64,000 nt of DNA from Felis catus (Eukaryota), in NCBI RefSeq assembly GCF_018350175.1, contig NC_058377.1, positions 106,268,001 to 106,332,000 of the forward strand. The letters are read 5' to 3'. The position numbers were made by a program, and so were the translations under genes. Below, piece after piece: positions 41,363-53,350 of the stretch. How positions within the stretch are numbered: position 1 is the stretch's first letter; every line of letters begins with the position of its first letter. The notes below the pieces were generated by a model. It had not been told where the DNA came from and searched no databases. It saw only the letters and a list, made by a program, of their open reading frames with translations.

Positions 41363-42372
41363 TCACAAGCTGCGGTAGGCACCCACAGTGTTGTCAAAGA
41401 GTTTCGTGTTGGGGAAGTGTCCAGCTTTGTCCAAGAGGAAGTAGAAGCGCCGGCCTTTGATCTTCAGAGGCAACATGGCAGGGACTTCACCACGGTGGGC
41501 CATGCAGGATACGTGGTTCAAAGGAACGGTGAAATGGGCACCCAAGCCAAAGGGAGCGTGAGTGGTGAGGGTCACCTGCTTTCCTCCAGCCAATAGCATC
41601 ACTGAACGCACAGAACGGAGGGAGAAGAGGAGACCGGCACCAAGTACCAGGGTACCTGCAGGAAGAGCAAAGTTTGGGGTGGGGCATTTTCGCGGGAGAG
41701 CTAAGCAGGAACCTCTCCGGTCCCCCCAGATTAAAACAATTGCGACGACGGTAACATTTCTTGAGCTCCTCTTCTACCCCGGGGTCTTGGGTTCCGTCAT
41801 TCCTTCCCAACAACATTAATGTCCACCCCCATTTTAAAGACAAGGAGACGGGTCCAGGACCGTGTAACTGCTCAAGCTCGCAGAGTGAGAGGCTGACCTC
41901 ACTCTAGGCCTGCCCGAGAGCTTGGCTCAAGGCCCTCCCACCTCCAGTACTGCCCGCCTCGGAGGGTCGGAAGTCCCTCACTGTCCTTGTCGGAGCAGGG
42001 AAGGTCGTGCCCAGCCACCCCACGTCCCCAAGGTGGGAAGCCAGCCCACGCCTTACCGATGGCGCCGCAGCCGAGCGCCAGGCCGTAGCGCCAGAGCGTG
42101 GAGCGCAGGTCCGAGCGGCCGCGGTCCGGGAACTCCGCGTCTGGAGACAGCGCCCGGGCCGGGGGTCGGGCCAAAGCTGCCACGGCCAGGGAGGCCCAGA
42201 AGACGCCCTGGCCCGCGCAGAACAGCCCGAGGACCGCGAAGAAGCGGCCCCGTTCGTGCTCGAAGAGCAGCACGTCCCGCGACGGGGCCGCGGCGTGCCA
42301 GGACCGGTGCACGGGCAGCGGCCGCAGCGCAAGGAGCAGCCGCACCGGCCACCGCCGCCCGGGCGCCGCCAT
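41363..42372 (-). CDS. TMEM223: TMEM223, mitochondrial inner-membrane protein, 202 aa
   Basis: complement(join(41363-41655,42057-42372)) = 609 nt. MAAPGRRW...RDVLLFEHERGRFFAVLGLFCAGQGVFWASLA...KAGHFPNTKLFDNTVGAYRSL*. N-terminus is Arg-rich and resembles a mitochondrial presequence. Confidence 0.95.
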
Positions 42373-42567
42373 AACTACGGCGGCGCTGCTTCTGGGGCGG
42401 GATTTCCGGCAGGCGGGCCCCGCCCCCAGCGCTCGCCTGCCCGCAGCCTGGGTCCAGCCCCGGGAGGGAGGGGAGGGCTGCCCGCCAGGCTTCGCCCCCG
42501 CACCACCTCCTGGCAGGGGCGGGGCAAAAACAATCTAGCACGCGTGACACAAAATACAATATCACTC

Positions 42568-42893: not shown

Positions 42894-45800
42894 TCACTTC
42901 ATGAACGCCACTTCTGGGATCTCGCCCTTGGCCTTAGCAAAAAGAGAAAAGGTCAGCAGAGCCAGCCCCTTTCCCCCACTCCCAGCTTGCCTGACCCTCT
43001 TGAAGGCCCAGAGATCTCTGGCCTTTTTGCTACTGAATTCCCAAAACTTACCTTCAGATGAGTAAAGGCCTGGGCAGATCTGGTGTAGTCCCAGTTGTTG
43101 TCCTGGAGGCACCTGCAGTGGGGGAAGAACAGGCACCTTCATTAGAACCAAAAGGTACTCACCCTGATGGCTAGATGCCACTTCAAAGTCCATTATATAG
43201 CAACACTTGCCAGTGTGTGCCAACAATTATATACATTCTTGCACTGTGTATACAAATGAAAAACTTGTAACAATCCAAATGTCTATCAATGGCCTACTGG
43301 ATACAAAGGATTACTAAGTAGCTGTCAAAAGGAGGAAGGTGATTTTTACAGTGATGGGGATGTGCCTGGGTGGCTCAGTCGGTTAAACTTCTGACTTCAG
43401 CTCAGGCCATGATTGCAGGGTGAGTTTGAGCCTCATGTTGGGCTCTGTGCTGACAGCTGGGAGCCTGGAGCCTGCTTCAGACTCTGTGTCTCCCCCTCTC
43501 TCTGCCCCTCCCCCGCTCATGCTCTATCCCTTTCTCTCTCTCTCAAAAATAAACAAGCATTTAAAATACACACACACACACACACACACACACAGTGATA
43601 GGGAAAGATGTTCACAAGACAAAAAGGTAAGTTGTAAAACAGTATATACAAAGAGACTTCATTTGGGCTTTAAATTTTGTGATGCTGATTTATGCAGAGG
43701 CCACATTTTTTTATGGACCGTATTTATAAGTTCTGGTTTTTTAAATCTTAGGAGCACTCATTATTCACTACCACCCCTACCTCCATTTCCCCCTACTGCT
43801 ACACATGCCCAGCACTCACTTCTGGGACCACTCAAGGTTCATGCCAGACTGGGTAGAGAATGCCTGCAGCATCTCCTGCTGCTCGGGGGAGAGGGTGGGC
43901 ACTGGGCTGGAGGAAGGTGTGGGTGCAGGCATGGCGAAGGCTCTCTGGATCTCATCAGGGCTGGCATTGCGCACAAACAGCTCGTCATTTACGATGCACA
44001 GCCTGTGGGACAAAAAGCACTTTAGGCAGCTGGACAAACAGACCACCTCATCTTCCCAACTTTATTCCTGTTCTCATACTTGACGCTCTTACACTCGACA
44101 GGTTCTTTCAGCATTCACAAAGAACCCCTCCCCCACTCTTGGTCATTACATTTTATCATTTACGACCCTTCCCACACAACCCGTGTAAGCGGTTCTCTAC
44201 CGAACACACTAGAATTACACATTCTCCCCCAACTCTGGACAGTTCTCATCCCCATTTATCTTCACGACAGGCCACAGAAATAAATATACTAGTTTCCAGA
44301 CGAGGAAACTTGCCCTTAGCTAGAAGTGGTGGGGCCAGGATGAAAAACCCAGCCTGGCTCCAGAGCCAAGCTCACCACCATTGTGAGAGCTTCCTCCTGA
44401 TTCCCCCCCCCCCCCCAAGCCTTTCTGAAATTCTGAAAACATCCTGAGGACCGGCTCCCCCATCCCCGCCCCTACCAACTCCCACATGCTGGCCATGGAT
44501 TGGGACTGGGACCCCATGTGGTAAGCCAAACACTTACCCTGAATTGCTGGCAGGAACAGCGACAAATGTCCTGGTGAAGGCTCGCAAAGAATCCCGAGAT
44601 TTTCCATCCACTGTAATGTTAACAACAGCAATGACCCCTTAGGATCAGCCACGCTTTGTGTTCACCGAAAGCTTCTCCCATCACGGTCTTACTTGATACG
44701 ACTCGCCTCAAGTAGACCAGACGGATGACTGCGTGTGTACAGGGGAGCAGAGGTGAAGAGGAATGTGGGGCCAGCGAGGACAATAACCACCCGTTAGCCC
44801 ACCCACAGAACATCTGTGTGCAAGGTCCTACGGCAAGCCCTTCACTTACTCCCCACAGCACCGCTAGGGGGTGGCTAGTACCCCTTTCTACAAATAAAGA
44901 ATCTGAAGCTCAGAGTTCATGTAAATTCGCCACGGGCACACGGGACCGAGGTTGGAATGGAGCCTTGGATCTGCCTGACACCAAAGCCTGTGTCCTCCTA
45001 ATCCTCAGGTTTGTCCCATATCCCAGACAGGAAAGACAGGTGGAGAGGGTAGGCCTCATGAAGATGGCTTGGGGCAGAAGAGGAGGAGGTCAGGGGAGGA
45101 GAGGGAAGGTAGCCGAGAAGCCGAGAGTGCGGAGAAAAAAAATCTAGCTGCAGGAGGGGCCCACTCTGCAAACTCCAGACTCCACCAAGATTCTCACCTT
45201 CCTTGAAGACCCCGTTGACGGAAAAACACAGCAATGTGCTCTGAAAGAGAAGCAGCGTCAGTCACCAGGTGGGCTCCCCGCCGGAGCCTAAGTCCCCCGT
45301 GCCTCGTGACCGCCCCTTCCTTCCCTAAGTTCAGGCTCCGGCCAGGGAAGAAACAGGTGCTTACTGTCTGGGCGCTTATGTCTACCACAAAGGAGTTGAC
45401 GTCGTGCTGAGTTTTGGGCAACTCATTGAGGAAGGCAACCACGTTGAGACGCGTGTGCTTCAGCAGGCGGAACCGCAGGGCTGTGGGGAGAACCCAAGGT
45501 TAGGGGCTGCCACACACTCCTGAGCCCTGTGACCGATTCCTTCCCACCTCCGTCCCAGGCTTTCTGCTCACATCACACACTTACTGGGGTCTTTGAGCTT
45601 CTTCACATTCCTGCTGTCCTTGAAGTACTCGGCCAGGTTGCTTCTAGGGGGATAAGTGGAAAAGGAGGCGGTGGTCAGCGTGGGATGGATGCTGGCAGGT
45701 GCTAGCCTGCATCTGCCGAGAAATGCTGGTCCCGGGCAGTGACACTCACCGGGAAGGGTTCTGGGGGGTAAAGGGGATGCTGAGGGAGCAGCAGGCCCCG

Positions 45801-48800
45801 TCATGGTAGGCGTCCAGGAGCCGCTGCCGGTCTCCAGAGTCATACACCGCGTAGTACCTGCGGGAACCACAAAAGGGCCAGTCTGAATTCCCTGCTCTGG
45901 ATCCACAGAACGACCCAACAGCTGCCCCGAGTGAGCGGCACTGGGGCTGGCCCACCTCTCCCCAGCCTCAGGGGTCCTCCGGCAATACTCACTGCTGCAA
46001 GAAATGCAGGACCAGGTTCTTCAGGGTCTCTGTTCCAAAATAGCTTCCCTGGAAGCAAACAGGTATCGGAATCCCGTAACCTATACTCTCCTCCCCACAC
46101 GAGTTCTAACTCTGCCCCACTTCTTACCTTGCAGGGCGGTAACGTCGTGGGGGCTTCAACGTCAAAGGCAATCGGAGGGGGTAACTCATGGCCATCCTGC
46201 AGAAAGGAAGTGGAAGTTGACAGCATAAACAGAGACGAAAAAGGCTGGATGAGTAATTAGATGGGAGAGCTAAGAGTGAGGGGGTCAGAGGCCAAAGAGA
46301 CATGGAGAAGATCCCAGGAGCTGTGATAGGTGCAACTTTTGTCTACAGGCGTTTCTCTGGGAAGAAAGATTCTATAACCTTTGCCAGATTCTCCAAGGGC
46401 TCCATGTCTCCAAATTCACGGTCATACAAACATACGTGAGGCGGGACCTTTTGGGTGGGAGAGGCTACGCTCGTGACAAAAGAGTTAAAAAAGCTGCGGA
46501 CTTACCAGGCGTAATAATTTGGGAAATCGTTCGCGAATGGCGCTGTCAAGAACAGGACAGAAGTGAGTGATGCTTCAGAGCCACCGTGCCTCCTGAGCTG
46601 CTCTAGGAGCACATACACCAACGCCCCAGGGACAGCCCCTCCCGTCCTCACTCCCGCCAGCCTCTGAGCTCCTGGGAGAGAGGCCCCACTCCCCACCTCA
46701 CCCGGGGCACCCAGAGACAACTGCCTTGAAGGCGGACCCTGTTCTCTCTGCCTGATCCGAGCACCACGAGAACGGCGCTCCCAGCCCGGGCTTTAAGCCA
46801 GGACGTCCTTCCCCACCCTGCCCCCCTTACCTTCCACCTACTCACCTGTGCAGCCCCGGGAGGAGGGAATGGGGTGGGAGCCCAGGGGCTCCGCTGCCTC
46901 AACGGGTATCCATCAGTTCTGCCCAGTCTGGCCGTGGCCAAGACCAGAAACACCACAGGGATGGCACAGGATGTTGGGGCAGGGAGATGAGCAAGGCAGG
47001 GTTTAGNNNNNNNNNNNNNNNNNNNNNNNNNNNNNNNNNNNNNNNNNNNNNNNNNNNNNNNNNNNNNNNNNNNNNNNNNNNNNNNNNNNNNNNNNNNNNN
47101 NNNNNNNNNNNNNNNNNNNNNNNNNNNNNNNNNNNNNNNNNNNNNNNNNNNNNNNNNNNNNNNNNNNNNNNNNNNNNNNNNNNNNNNNNNNNNNNNNNNN
47201 NNNNNNNNNNNNNNNNNNNNNNNNNNNNNNNNNNNNNNNNNNNNNNNNNNNNNNNNNNNNNNNNNNNNNNNTGGGGCAGGGGAGAGATGGGGGAGACAGA
47301 GGGGGAGCAGAGAGAGAGAAAAGAAAGAGGAAGCAAAGAAAAGGCGAAAGAACGATCAGGCAAGGAGGCATTTAGAAGAACGAGGAAGGAAAAAGGGAAG
47401 AAGACACCCAACACAGCCTTTTCCTTCAGCTGCCCCTTTCCCTGTGGTCCAAGGTAGAAACAGAAAACAAATTCTTGCTGCAGCGAGAGGGCAGTTGCTG
47501 TCGTCCAGGTCTCTGCTGGCTACCTGGGTCCCGATCTGAGCTGGGCGTGGGAAGCGAAGCAGCCATGGGGGCGGGAGACCTCCCTCAGAAGGTTGAGGGT
47601 TCAGGCCCCTGCAAAGTTGGGGGGGTGAGGGTCTGTGCCCCACCTCTGTTGGCCCCCAAGTTCTCTCCTGATGGCCCCTCTGCGACTGTGCCTGTCTTAG
47701 GTTGTTCCTTCCCTGAGGAATCTTACCCGTCTCTGGCTAACCAGCCATCCTCCGGGGCCAAGCAGGGTGACGTGAGGTGTGTGAGTGAGGGCGGGGCAGC
47801 GCCCCCCGAGAGGGTCAGTTCTCTGTCTCCTTGGTAGCCATTGCCCCCGTGGCCTCCACGCCCAGCACCTGCCTTGGGACGCCCTCGCCTGCTGGCGGGG
47901 CCCCGGCTCTGATCACACGGCTTGGGGAACCCAGGTTTCTTCTCCAGGGAGGGCCCAGCTCACAGCTCCGGGCAGGAGAGACAGACTGCATGGCACCAGC
48001 TCCGAGGAGTCCTCCACCTCAGCACGAGTGGGAAAGCCCAGGCAACAGCCTTGGGCACGTGGACCATGAGAGGAGAGTCCCTCTTGGCACGGCAAGAGGG
48101 GCCGTCGTGAGACAAAGAAGGGAAGGCCCATCAACAGGAAGTCCCGGGGAGGGAGGGCTTTCTCAGCCCAGGAATACCGGGCTCTTAGCACAAGGCAGCT
48201 CCACGTACGGGGCATACGCAAGACACCCCCTGGTCGTGGTAGAAAAAGGGAGGTGCCCTTCCTGGAACAGTAGGGTAGGGAGATTCTAGAAAAGGCAGTG
48301 TTCAGGAAGGAAGAGGCAAGACCACAGGACAGCGAACAGGCAGTCAGGTGAGAAGGAAGGAGAGGAGACCTTGGGGCCAAGCTGGGACACACGGACAGAC
48401 GAAGGGAGGAGCACGTGATCCTCCCAAAGGACAGGCGGCTCCAGCTCAGGGCTGCACAGCTCCTGCAGACGGGCGCTGGTCAGGGTGCATTAGCTCAGCC
48501 TCCCAGGGGGTGAAGGTCCCCGGGAGGGGAGACAGAGGCCACAACTGACCTGATGTAGGTGGACTGGTCTCGGAAGGTGTCACACAGCGGGTTTCCGTCG
48601 AGCCACAGCTCTTCCAGCTTCAGCCCTTTTACCTTGTCCAACTCCCTCTCGGACTTCAACTGCAGAGACAGGGACAGAGAGCGGGCAAGAGACCCCGGTA
48701 AGGAGAGGCGGCGAGAGTCCCAGCTCGGAAACTCCCTCCCGGGGGCCCCCCTCTGCTCACCCCGCCCACAACCGGGCTCTCCTGCCTCACCTCGTTTCCG

Positions 48801-51800
48801 GAGAGGTTGAGGATCTTCAGGTTGGGTGCTTTCTGCACCAGGCTGGACATGTCATCCAGCCTGTACAGCCTGTTGTTGCTCAAGTTCAAGGACAACAGCT
48901 GCGGGCAGAGGAAAGTTTAGAGGAAGCGCCGCCAACAGAGGGTTCAGAGACGCACCTGCCTCCCAACCCCATCCTACCCACCCCACCCCGCCCTCCTCCC
49001 CTCTCAAAACGGGACAAAGGCCTCACCTCGGGGATGTTCTCCTCGATGATCCGCAGGGTGGCCGCCATGCAGCTCCTGCGATTCAGGACAACATCAATGT
49101 TCTGGGCCACCAAGTCTTCAGGAAACAGAAAGGAAGGAAAGGCGAGTCTGAGAGGGCTTTCCCAGGTCAGAGTTAGTACCAAACCATTCTCAAACCGTCC
49201 CCGTCTGACAGATCCCCCCGCTCGGTCCCCACCTCTCTGAGCGGGACAGCTATCAGCCATACCTGGGTCTGAACGGAGGCCCTTCAGGTCAAGCGCTTGT
49301 TGGGAGCCATCATATCGTTTGCTCATGATCAGCTACAGGGGAAGGAAAATGGGCCGGTGGTCACTGGGGCTCTGTGGGGAGAGGGGGGGTGGCAGGAGTG
49401 CACGTGGGAAGTGGGAGGGCTGGAGGGAAACATGACGCGAGCCTGCCTCACCTTTAGCTGCTCTACTTGTTCCGGCTTCAGCTCGTTCTGTACAGAATGG
49501 GGTGGGACAGAAGAATTGATGATGATAGAGATCTGCAGGGAAGACACAGAGGGCAGGTTGAATTCCGGGGAGGCCTAAGCAGCAGGCCCAAGACCCACCC
49601 CCAGCCACGCCAGGCCCTTTACACACACCCTTCGGTTCTCCTGATCCAAAATCTTATAGTTGACGGCCTTCAACGCAGAGGCGGTACTGGCATCCTCAAC
49701 AAAAAACTGGGCCCGTGTGTTTTCATAGTGAAACTGCACAAAGAAGAAACAAGAACATGAGACTCGGGAGCCCAGGGCCCCTGGTCCAGCTGGCCCCTCG
49801 CCTTCCTTGGTGCCCAGCCAGCCACGCAGGCCTTATCTCACCTCAATGGGGGTGAAAGGGACACTGCACTTGCTCTGAATCACACTCAGGAGCCATGACT
49901 TGTCATATTTTCTGCCATAAGGAATCTAGACGAGAGAAAGAGAAGGGAACAGTGAGGAACGAAGGCTGACCAGCAGCCCCAGTCTACTCCTTTCACACCT
50001 TCCGCCGACCCTCACAAGGTTTTCTAAAGAAAGGGCCAGTTAAAAGTTTTTTGTTTTCTTTCTTTCTTTCTTTTTTTTTTTAACTCAAGCCAGACATGGA
50101 TTCCTTGCCCTCCTTTCTGTCCATTTAAACTTAGCATTTCTTGGGGTGCCTGGGTGGCCCAGTCAGTTAAGTGTCTGACCCTTGATTTCGGTTAAGGTCA
50201 TGATTTCACTTAAGGGAACTTAAGGGACCCGAAGCCCCACACTTGGCTTGAGCCAAATGGAGACATTCAGAGGAATTACTCCACCTCCCAACCAGTTTTC
50301 ATGTTTCCCTTTAGATGGTGTCCCCATCCCTGCCCCCCAGCATCCTGCTTGTCCTACTCCTTTTCTTAACCTGCTCTTGGGTGTTCTAGAAGAAAGGAGA
50401 GACACCTGATTGTGGAGAAAACAGATTTTGTCATGTGAAAAGTAGAAACCTTCATTCTGAGCCCAGCTCCCTGTCTCCCTTGCACATCCACTTCCCCAGA
50501 CACTCACTGTAATCTTAAACCAGTTCTTCGAGGTCCCGTCCTGGCTGGTGCCAGCCCCTCCTCTCTCTGGAAGAGCTCTGTCTCTCCGCACGGTAACATG
50601 AATGCGGTCTCGATCGTGCCAACTGTCACCTCGACGGTTGGGTCGGACAGCATAGGGGTTGCTATGGGGAAGCAGGGAACAAAATGCCCACAAACACTAG
50701 GCATGTCTTCTCCAAGGCCTGCCCACACTGTTGTCAGGATTACAGCTAAGACTGCTCAACCAGGAAGCTGGCCCTGGCATCCCTCACTTTTCCAGGTGGA
50801 AAGAGAAATGACGTGGCCAGTAAGAGAGCTTTATCAAACAAATGGGCCGCTGAATTCAAACCAGATCAACTGGTTACTTACTATCGTACTCGGGGAACCT
50901 CCTGGGCGTCACTCATCGCTACATCTCTGTCATCTTCCTCCAGGCGGGAAGACCGAATGCCAGAACCTCCTCTTCCAGACCTGCGGTTCCCCTCACCATA
51001 TTTCCACCGGAAGGGACCCCGGCCCTTCTTTCTTCTTTGAGGGAAACTAACACGGTCATCGTGCTCTGGGGTTAAAAGCAGAACATCAGTTAGAAAGTAC
51101 ATTGCCAGTCCAGCTACCTTGTTGGGGCAGTCACAGTATCCAGCACCCTGCTATCGGATGAGATACACAGTAACTACAGGGGCCACCTCCCTGCAAACTT
51201 CTGTCTGTTGAGAGAGAACCCTCTCTGTGGCATGGCGGCATGAAGGAAATGTTACTGGAAGACAGTGTAGGGCTTTAGGAAAAGGAATCAGAAACTGGAA
51301 CTAACAGAGAAGAGAAGCACAATGTGGAAGTGTGAGCGGACCCAAAGCAGAACTAGACACAACTCGGACCCCCGGGGAAATTCACCTGAAACTTGCTTGT
51401 TTAGCCTCCCAAATCTATTTAACCCCTCTCAAACTCTGGGTGGTGACCTCTCTCACATCTTCTAAAATCAACCAATCACAGTGATTACATTAGCTTTCAG
51501 TAAACAATACTTTTGCAATACAGAGGACAAACGGCATACGGTTACAAAGGTGGTCAATTTAAAGGCTTTTTAAAAACTCTTGTTCTCAAACTGCCACTCT
51601 GAAGTTTTGGGAGTGAACTCTTCATTTCCTTGGCCAGAAATGCCTTTTTAAAAGAGTCTTTTTTTTTTTTTTTTTTTTTTTTAGTGTTTATTTATTTTTG
51701 AGAGAGAGACCAAGGCAGAGGCAGAGCAGTACTCATGGGGGAGGGGCAGAGAGAGACAGAGACACAGAATCCGAAGCAGGCTCCAGGCTCTGAGCTGTCA

Positions 51801-52914
51801 GCACAGAGCCCAACGCAGGGCTCAAACTCACAAACTGTGAGACCATGACCTGAGCCAAAGTCGGAGGCTTAAATGACTGAGCCACCCCAGGTGCCCCCAG
51901 AAATGCCTTTTAACTCAGGAGACAACTCCTAAGACTCAGGTTCTAATGACAGCTAGGGAGCTTAACAAGGGTCCTTGACTGCTCTCAGGTAACATGACCT
52001 TCTGAATCCTGGTGTGTAGGAATGGCTTATTTAAAAAAAAAAAAAAAAAAAAAGGTCTGTGATTCCTAAAAAGATCTGCCTCTTGCTTAGTAAGTACTCT
52101 GCAAACAATGAACCCTAAGAAATGACCCTGGTGGGGGGGGGGGGGGGGAATAACGAATAGAAGGCACAGCTAACATTCACTGAGAACTCTCTCCAGTGTC
52201 AGGCACTATGCTCCAGGCACCTGATATGAATGATCTCATTTTAGCACATACACGGACACACTAAGAAAATAAACACTGTTACTACCTCCTTACGGGGACA
52301 GAAAGCAAGGCCCGGGAGTGGACTTCACTCAAGCTTAGTGAAGACAACTCAGGATTCAAACCTCGGTCTTCTTGCGCTCCTACCCACTATTCTGGACTAA
52401 AATCCAGTGTAGTGCTCGGACTAGCACAGGGAGCTGGTGTGGAGGTCTGAAACATTAAGCCAAAGCCAAGGCCGCAGGGGAGGCGGGGCAAGACAGACTG
52501 GACGAGGTGGAAAGCAGCACACGGGCAGCCGATGAACTGGGCGGGCACTGACTCACATTAAAGGAAGAGTCTGGCCGCCAAACTGAACTGACAAGCATCA
52601 ACCACCTACAAAGTTCAAAGGAATCTCGCCACCCCGCCGCCAAGCCACCCGCTCCAAGCCGAAGCTCCACGCAACGCCAGGATTCCCGAGCCAACGCCTC
52701 GGGCGCTCAGCCTCGATGGAGGCCGGGCCCCCGGGTGGCCTCGCCCCCGGCCCGCGCCGGCCCCCCCCCCCTCCGCCGCGGACACCCAGCCCCTCGCGGC
52801 CTCCCGCCCCGGGGCTGCGGCCTAGGCCGGCACCGCCCACCGGGCCCCAGATCGCCTCGCTTCCCGCCCAGAGAGCCAGCACTGACCGTTGTAGGACTTC
52901 CCCTCGTCCGCCAT
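42894..52914 (-). CDS. NXF1: NXF1 / TAP, nuclear RNA export factor 1, 618 aa, 21 coding exons
   Basis: complement(join(42894-42932,43052-43112,43820-44002,44538-44610,45198-45240,45365-45480,45585-45643,45750-45857,45993-46048,46128-46196,46506-46542,48550-48659,48791-48898,49027-49115,49263-49332,49452-49532,49629-49733,49842-49925,50508-50661,50882-51065,52887-52914)) = 1857 nt, all [17 protein letters not shown]... with RRM, LRR ([11 protein letters not shown]), NTF2-like and UBA (...[11 protein letters not shown]) domains. Confidence 0.98.
47007..47271. other. assembly gap (265 N) in NXF1 intron 10
   Basis: Run of N. Confidence 1.
47673..47759 (-). other. constitutive transport element (CTE) stem-loop in NXF1 intron 10
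   Basis: Minus strand: GGCCCC...AGCCAGAGACGGGTAAGA-TTCCTCAGGGAAGGAAC-AACCTAAGACAGG...GGGGCC. The two motifs match the remembered internal-loop strands of the MPMV CTE, and the flanking arms are complementary. Confidence 0.88.
48495..48549 (-). CDS. NXF1: intron-10-encoded C-terminal tail of short NXF1 (sNXF1)
   Basis: Reading exon 10 into intron 10 gives (R)[20 protein letters not shown], a 355-aa product. This matches the remembered human sNXF1 tail. Confidence 0.8.
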
Positions 52915-53350
52915 GGCACAGCGCGAAACAGGGCAGGTTCAGGCGCGGGCCACGACCCCGCCAAGCGTCCGAACACCCAAGCACCCCAGCCTAATCGCTC
53001 CTACGCCCGGCGCCACCGCATTTATCCTGCGAACTACGTCGCGCGCCGCCGACGTCCCCCGGTGGTGGGCGGTGCCGCCGAAGGAGCGCGGCCCGCTGCG
53101 CGTGCGCACTCGGCTGGCAGCTGGGTCGGGGCGGAGCTCGCCTCTGCCTACCCCCACCAGAGACCCGGGCGCGGACAGCTCGCGCAAGGTTGGGGCGGGC
53201 CCAGTCGGCCCGCAGTCTGCTTTCTTCTTTCTTCGGGCATCAGCTAGGCCGGCACCTCTGGGGCCAGCGCCGGAGCACATAGGAGGCTGGTGCAGCCCAG
53301 GACTCCGAGAGGAACAGAAAGGGGGTCGCACGAAGGGCCCTCCGAGGAAT
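52640..53350 (-). promoter_or_regulatory. NXF1 CpG-island promoter and exon 1
   Basis: Very CpG-rich, GC boxes, ATGGCGG (YY1-like) overlapping the start codon at 52914. Confidence 0.75.

Follow-up and report, generated by a model that had tools for sequence, protein, structure and literature searches.

NXF1 is the main mRNA export receptor, and the RNA that retains its intron 10 encodes the cofactor sNXF1. Retention is on record for both human and mouse and is described for the whole intron (PMC4338338; PMC5170612). Wang et al. (2015) described a conserved sequence that resembles a 5' splice site, adjacent to the internal loop of the NXF1 CTE, and proposed that it binds U1 without being used in splicing; in their GERP scan of the intron, only the 94-nt CTE region was reported as conserved, and the twin-donor block considered here is unmentioned (PMC4338338). 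SRSF3 binds Nxf1 intron 10, a statement made at the level of the intron, and loss of SRSF3 leads to lower retention (PMC5963917).

Yin et al. screened mouse Nxf1 intron 10 for chromatin-retained RNA pieces and found two strong ones, both towards the 3' end (10.1101/310433). NXF1-enChr, a 162-nt piece near the 3' end of the intron, contains a 7-nt core (positions 39 to 45) within which 19 of the 23 loss-of-retention mutations recovered by saturation mutagenesis fall, and this core plus the two preceding bases (positions 37 to 45) reads CAGGUGAGU. A weaker U1 site, AGGUAAG, follows 16 nt on, at positions 53 to 59. Of the single changes named, 42G>A and 51G>C raise the retention effect and 73G>C lowers it. 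U1 RNA was enriched ∼70-fold in pull-downs centered on the core, mutation of which freed a GFP reporter RNA from chromatin, and the core and neighboring sequence were reported to be highly conserved. The data on U1 snRNP binding and chromatin retention of intron-retaining RNA come from mouse and HEK cells, and no splicing was seen in a reporter that carried the 162-nt piece only. The effect described is chromatin retention via U1, as distinct from exon inclusion, nonsense-mediated decay (NMD) or measured intron excision (10.1101/310433).

Decoy exons form a further class of element in retained introns. Those of SF3B1 intron 4, OGT intron 4, ARGLU1, and DDX39B are conserved noncoding cassette-like units with duplicated splice dinucleotides, lie in retained introns of >1 kb, and were defined from junction reads obtained under NMD inhibition, U2AF cross-links, and minigene mutation (PMC6097662).

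NXF1 intron 10 and its twin 5' splice-site motifs

The window (the whole stretch of 64,000 nt of Felis catus DNA that was analyzed) carries NXF1 on its minus strand, the strand of all of the features described below. The translation of exon 10 (48550 to 48659) matched NXF1 chains in the PDB (E value, 4e-18), ending near residue 338. It is followed, after residue ∼338, by the CTE-bearing intron 10 (46543 to 48549; 2007 nt, including 265 N), by exon 11 (46506 to 46542; 37 nt), and by exon 12, which starts at 46196 and has further exons beyond it. A stretch of 265 N, either a gap or masked sequence and hereafter called the N gap, occupies 47007 to 47271. Reading through from exon 10 into intron 10 adds 18 residues before a stop, i.e., the sNXF1 tail, in agreement with the 356 residues of published sNxf1 (PMC5170612). 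The exon 10 match and the agreement in tail length make the identification of the gene and intron sound. The exon 10 donor (48541 to 48552), CAG/GTCAGT (GT at 48549), has C at +3 and is a weak site, which fits a retention-prone intron. Rfam gave no match above noise over 45500 to 49500. A search of sequencing runs gave 20 matches from 10 studies, none of them recorded as RNA. There is no AATAAA or ATTAAA anywhere in intron 10, and guarding against intronic polyadenylation is therefore an unlikely role for sequences here. Elsewhere in the window, the GC-rich stretches at 42000 to 42499 (0.77 GC) and 52500 to 52999 (0.70 GC) are CpG-island-like.

Near the 3' end of the intron lies a strong U1 recognition site, CAGGTGAGT (46840 to 46848), which as a donor reads CAG/GTGAGT, with its GT at 46845, 303 nt from the intron end. 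A second U1 site, AAGGTAAGG (46825 to 46833), reads AAG/GTAAGG, with its GT at 46830, 15 nt from the first, and contains AGGTAAG at 46832 to 46826. A third, weaker donor-like site, CGG/GTGAGG (46696 to 46704; GT at 46701), overlaps GAG/GTGGGG. These are the three donors that an earlier note on this DNA had named, and all are present as it described them. When sites were scored with an approximate 9-mer matrix built on generally known donor preferences, the first two ranked second and fourth among the 3160 minus-strand GTs in the window, and both outscored the exon 10 and exon 11 donors. By chance, two of the four top-scoring GTs would be expected to lie ≤15 nt apart in ∼0.3% of cases. Perfect matches to MAGGTRAGT number six in the window, against 2.6 expected, and only one of them is in intron 10. 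The donor cluster is not attributable to chance, and it belongs to the best-conserved sequence of the intron.

The spacing of the two sites matches that in the mouse element. When position 37 of NXF1-enChr is set at 46848, the 9-mer core is identical (CAGGTGAGT in DNA letters and CAGGUGAGU in RNA), AGGTAAG falls exactly at positions 53 to 59, and the G residues at 46843, 46834, and 46812 correspond to positions 42, 51, and 73. The orthologue of the 162-nt piece would then occupy 46723 to 46884. This equivalence is based on motifs, spacing, and named positions taken from the text of the preprint, not on an alignment. That preprint was reportedly published later in Nature. The predicted fold of the 162-nt piece places the core in a 10-nt hairpin loop (ensemble energy, −73 kcal/mol), but the fold does not exceed shuffled sequences in stability (z-score, 0.28).

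Gene, intron, location near the intron's 3' end, 9-mer core, spacing of the second site, three named G residues, and high conservation are all shared with NXF1-enChr, and on this sequence evidence the twin donor motif (46848 to 46825) and its conserved surroundings are probably the NXF1-enChr U1 recognition element of this genome. The core feature is therefore already known under another name, and because the donor cluster corresponds to an experimentally defined U1 docking site, a U1 site is what would be expected in another mammal. What differs is the description: NXF1-enChr was presented as a chromatin-retention signal, in mouse and in human cells, and not as an exon. Under the mapping by offset, moreover, the 162-nt piece begins inside the candidate exon discussed below and lacks its AGs. 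The earlier note had interpreted the cluster as part of a poison or decoy exon that balances full-length NXF1, sNXF1, and an NMD-degraded form. That interpretation is supported in part: the donors are conserved and their mouse counterpart binds U1 and alters the fate of the retained RNA, but the published function of that counterpart is chromatin retention.

We propose that, on transcripts in which intron 10 remains, U1 snRNA would pair with CAGGUGAGU and, less strongly, with the AGGUAAG that lies 16 nt downstream, and that efficient splicing would not follow from U1 binding at these twin sites. The U1-bound, intron-containing RNA would be held on chromatin or in the nucleus, and its expression would be lowered. 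Such a hold would oppose export via the CTE, which lies further upstream in intron 10. Binding of U1 and the resulting retention are presumed, by analogy, to carry over from mouse to cat.

A second conserved U1-type site is present in the same intron. CGG/GTAAGA (47718 to 47729; GT at 47726) is the site described by Wang et al. (PMC4338338); it differs from the twin donors in lying ∼880 nt upstream of them, inside the CTE.

Conservation of the block around the donors

Conservation was measured on translated intronic open reading frames (ORFs), with a 102-codon open frame over the candidate exon and donors as the query, which returned 14 ORF calls from other mammalian sources, including one UniRef entry labeled Nomascus leucogenys. 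That entry, A0A2I3GB57_NOMLE, a gibbon “uncharacterized protein,” represents an ORF called within intron 10 of NXF1. Translated identity was 84% over 47006 to 46950, 82% over the 27 nt preceding the first AG of the candidate exon, 72% over the 5' part of that exon (46926 to 46888; the lowest value within the conserved block), 98% over its 3' part (46887 to 46849), 99% over the twin donors (46848 to 46822), and 67% over the 42 nt downstream of the donors. The cross-mammal check proposed in the earlier note thus supports the donors, with 98 to 99% translated identity over 46887 to 46822 among the 14 ORFs. The nine codons that span both GTs (QVSRWKVRG) are identical in all sources except for a single Q>K change, and one ORF ends within them. 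Farther upstream, the CU-rich part of the intron aligned at only 37 to 56%, with many gaps.

The jump in identity at 46887 coincides with the start of the putative NXF1-enChr orthologue at 46884. Upstream of this point, however, the conserved block, which is single copy within the window, reaches ∼120 nt beyond the 162-nt element, and the U1-element reading does not cover this additional conservation. Both R codons containing the AGs of the candidate exon are retained, at the amino acid level, in 13 of the 14 ORFs. The gibbon ORF is the one without the first of them: it lacks 54 nt that include the first AG (about 46976 to 46924) but keeps the second AG.

A protein-coding ORF in the intron was considered as the source of this conservation and rejected. 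The frame changes close to 46950 in this genome, it shifts in two other sources as well, and stops vary. The ORFs are accordingly read as a measure of conservation at the nucleotide level and not as proteins. Because of the 1-nt frame change at ∼46950 relative to the ORFs of other mammals, we conclude that the conserved block is not protein coding.

Another conserved block of intron 10 lies at 47498 to 47566, ∼110 nt downstream of the CTE, and contains a donor-like CAG/GTAGCC. The long orthologous ORFs all start at this block, with nearly identical first 20-odd residues.

The candidate exon and alternative readings

An exon-like frame surrounds the U1 element. The candidate cassette exon occupies 46846 to 46927 (82 nt, or 97 nt to the second donor) and is preceded by the first AG past the N gap, at 46929 to 46928; a second AG 9 nt on, at 46920 to 46919, gives alternative sizes of 73 and 88 nt. 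All four sizes are 1 mod 3, contain no stop, and shift the frame by +1, and in the frame check by translation every form gives a TGA in exon 12 at 46188 to 46186, i.e., 62 nt short of the exon 12 end, which exceeds the distance of >50 nt before a later junction that is expected of a poison exon. Because the AGs are 9 nt apart and the GTs 15 nt apart, both multiples of 3, all sizes necessarily share one frame shift, which is thus uninformative.

The acceptor side is weaker than the donor side. On an approximate matrix, the first AG is equaled or outscored by 850 of the window's 4979 AGs, and the candidate acceptor is weaker than the real acceptors of NXF1. The flank immediately upstream (46930 to 47006), a putative weak 3' splice-site region, is AG free and 69% pyrimidine and contains the branch-point-like motifs CTCAT and CCAAC. 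On the far side of the N gap, and running into it, is an AG-free, CU-rich tract of 147 nt (47272 to 47418; 86% pyrimidine over 47410 to 47272), which is the joint-longest AG-free run on the minus strand of the window. AG-free runs of ≥77 nt number 43 in the window, and 13% of composition-matched shuffles of the 77-nt piece and 52% of those of the 139-nt piece were also AG free. The AG-free stretch is therefore unexceptional for its composition, and its continuity across the 265-nt N gap cannot be known. Lying upstream of the exon-like block, the CU-rich tract could serve as a platform for PTB-type binding.

The structural claims of the earlier note stand: the coordinates of the tandem AGs, the exon sizes, the +1 shift, and the position of the TGA were all reproduced. 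Its long AG-free stretch is correctly placed, but such a stretch is readily matched by shuffled sequence and is interrupted by the N gap. Splice-site scoring, a check that it proposed, favored the donors and did not favor the acceptor when done with the approximate matrices. The U1-element explanation does not require that the exon be used, and the further readings that follow overlap with one another and are not mutually exclusive.

The reading that survives best extends the U1-element explanation. The weak but conserved 3' splice-site region (47006 to 46919) and the twin 5' sites would together act as a decoy exon, forming an exon-definition-like complex. By drawing the donor of exon 10 and the acceptor of exon 11 into unproductive interactions, this complex would slow the removal of intron 10 and set the ratio of full-length to intron-retaining RNA. 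The premise that clustered 5' splice sites mark decoys is in line with the paired 5' and 3' sites described for OGT, ARGLU1, and DDX39B (PMC6097662). As in those decoys, for which Parra et al. stress such features, the unit here is conserved and noncoding, leads to a stop downstream, and has duplicated AGs (9 nt apart) and GTs (15 nt apart), and the retained intron around it exceeds 1 kb (2007 nt); cassettes are, in addition, several-fold enriched in long retained introns (PMC6097662). The 82 to 84% conservation upstream of the AGs, which the 162-nt U1 element leaves unexplained, also favors a decoy, and SRSF3 binding in the intron, with lower retention on SRSF3 loss, fits an SR-dependent one (PMC5963917). 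Against this, the acceptor has a poor matrix score and, in contrast to the published decoys, is weaker than the real acceptors of the gene; the gibbon ORF lacks the stretch with the first AG; within the block, conservation is lowest in the 5' part of the exon; the only conserved region that Wang et al. reported in this intron is that of the CTE (PMC4338338); and no paper in the literature searched calls the element a decoy. The published decoys were established by RNA and mutational data, whereas the present candidate is proposed from sequence. On balance, a decoy role is a tentative proposal that we hold to be somewhat less probable than its absence.

A more inclusive version would make the published U1 chromatin-retention motif the 5' splice-site end of a conserved decoy exon, in which the weak, conserved 3' splice-site region and the CU-rich tract upstream of it are needed along with the U1 sites for the stalling of intron 10 removal, such that chromatin retention and decoy action are one mechanism, with SRSF3- or PTB-type tuning and a minor NMD-bound product. 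We consider this version unlikely, albeit not markedly so.

Alternatively, the 82- or 97-nt exon could be a true poison exon, spliced in at a regulated rate, with the product lost to NMD as a third, degradative output of NXF1. It would resemble the poison exons of SR protein genes, which are likewise conserved cassettes that break the reading frame of a gene involved in RNA metabolism. For the exons of SR protein genes, inclusion and NMD sensitivity have been demonstrated. The correct frame shift, the stop 62 nt ahead of the next junction, and two strong, conserved donors all agree with this explanation, but the exon has a weak acceptor, and conservation, instead of being spread evenly over the exon and both splice sites, is highest at the U1 sites. 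A word search of proteins of 56 to 178 amino acids found only unspliced intronic ORFs, none of which joins exon 10 to this exon, although this counts for little, as assemblies drop rare forms. In the literature searched, no poison, decoy, or cryptic exon was reported for NXF1. Regulated inclusion is, in our judgment, improbable, and NXF1 might only conceivably be under the three-way autoregulatory switch that the earlier note envisaged.

The donors could also act as alternative 5' splice sites only, joining exon 11 and thereby removing the last 303 or 288 nt from intron-retaining RNA. Their consensus strength and their position ∼300 nt from a moderate acceptor would permit this, but retention is described for the whole intron (PMC4338338; PMC5170612) and Yin et al. 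report U1 binding without splicing (10.1101/310433), which makes this use of the donors distinctly improbable. Finally, splice-like motifs arising by chance, or conservation due to an intronic protein-coding ORF, can be dismissed as highly improbable, since the donor pair is rare by chance and 99% identity persists across both GTs, and since the open frames of 150 to 175 codons called in many species, one of them filed in UniRef as an uncharacterized gibbon protein, lie in pyrimidine-rich sequence that is stop poor in any case.

The preferred reading thus remains the U1 element, of which the decoy exon is a testable extension. How cells set the shares of retained, exported, and nuclear-held NXF1 RNA is only partly understood. 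The present comparison makes a modest addition, namely, that the conserved block is laid out like an exon and continues upstream of the published element for another ∼120 nt. Because the block extends upstream with this layout, a direct test of whether the “U1 tether” and the “decoy exon” are the same is possible. Were they the same, the NXF1/sNXF1 ratio could be manipulated by antisense blocking of the site.
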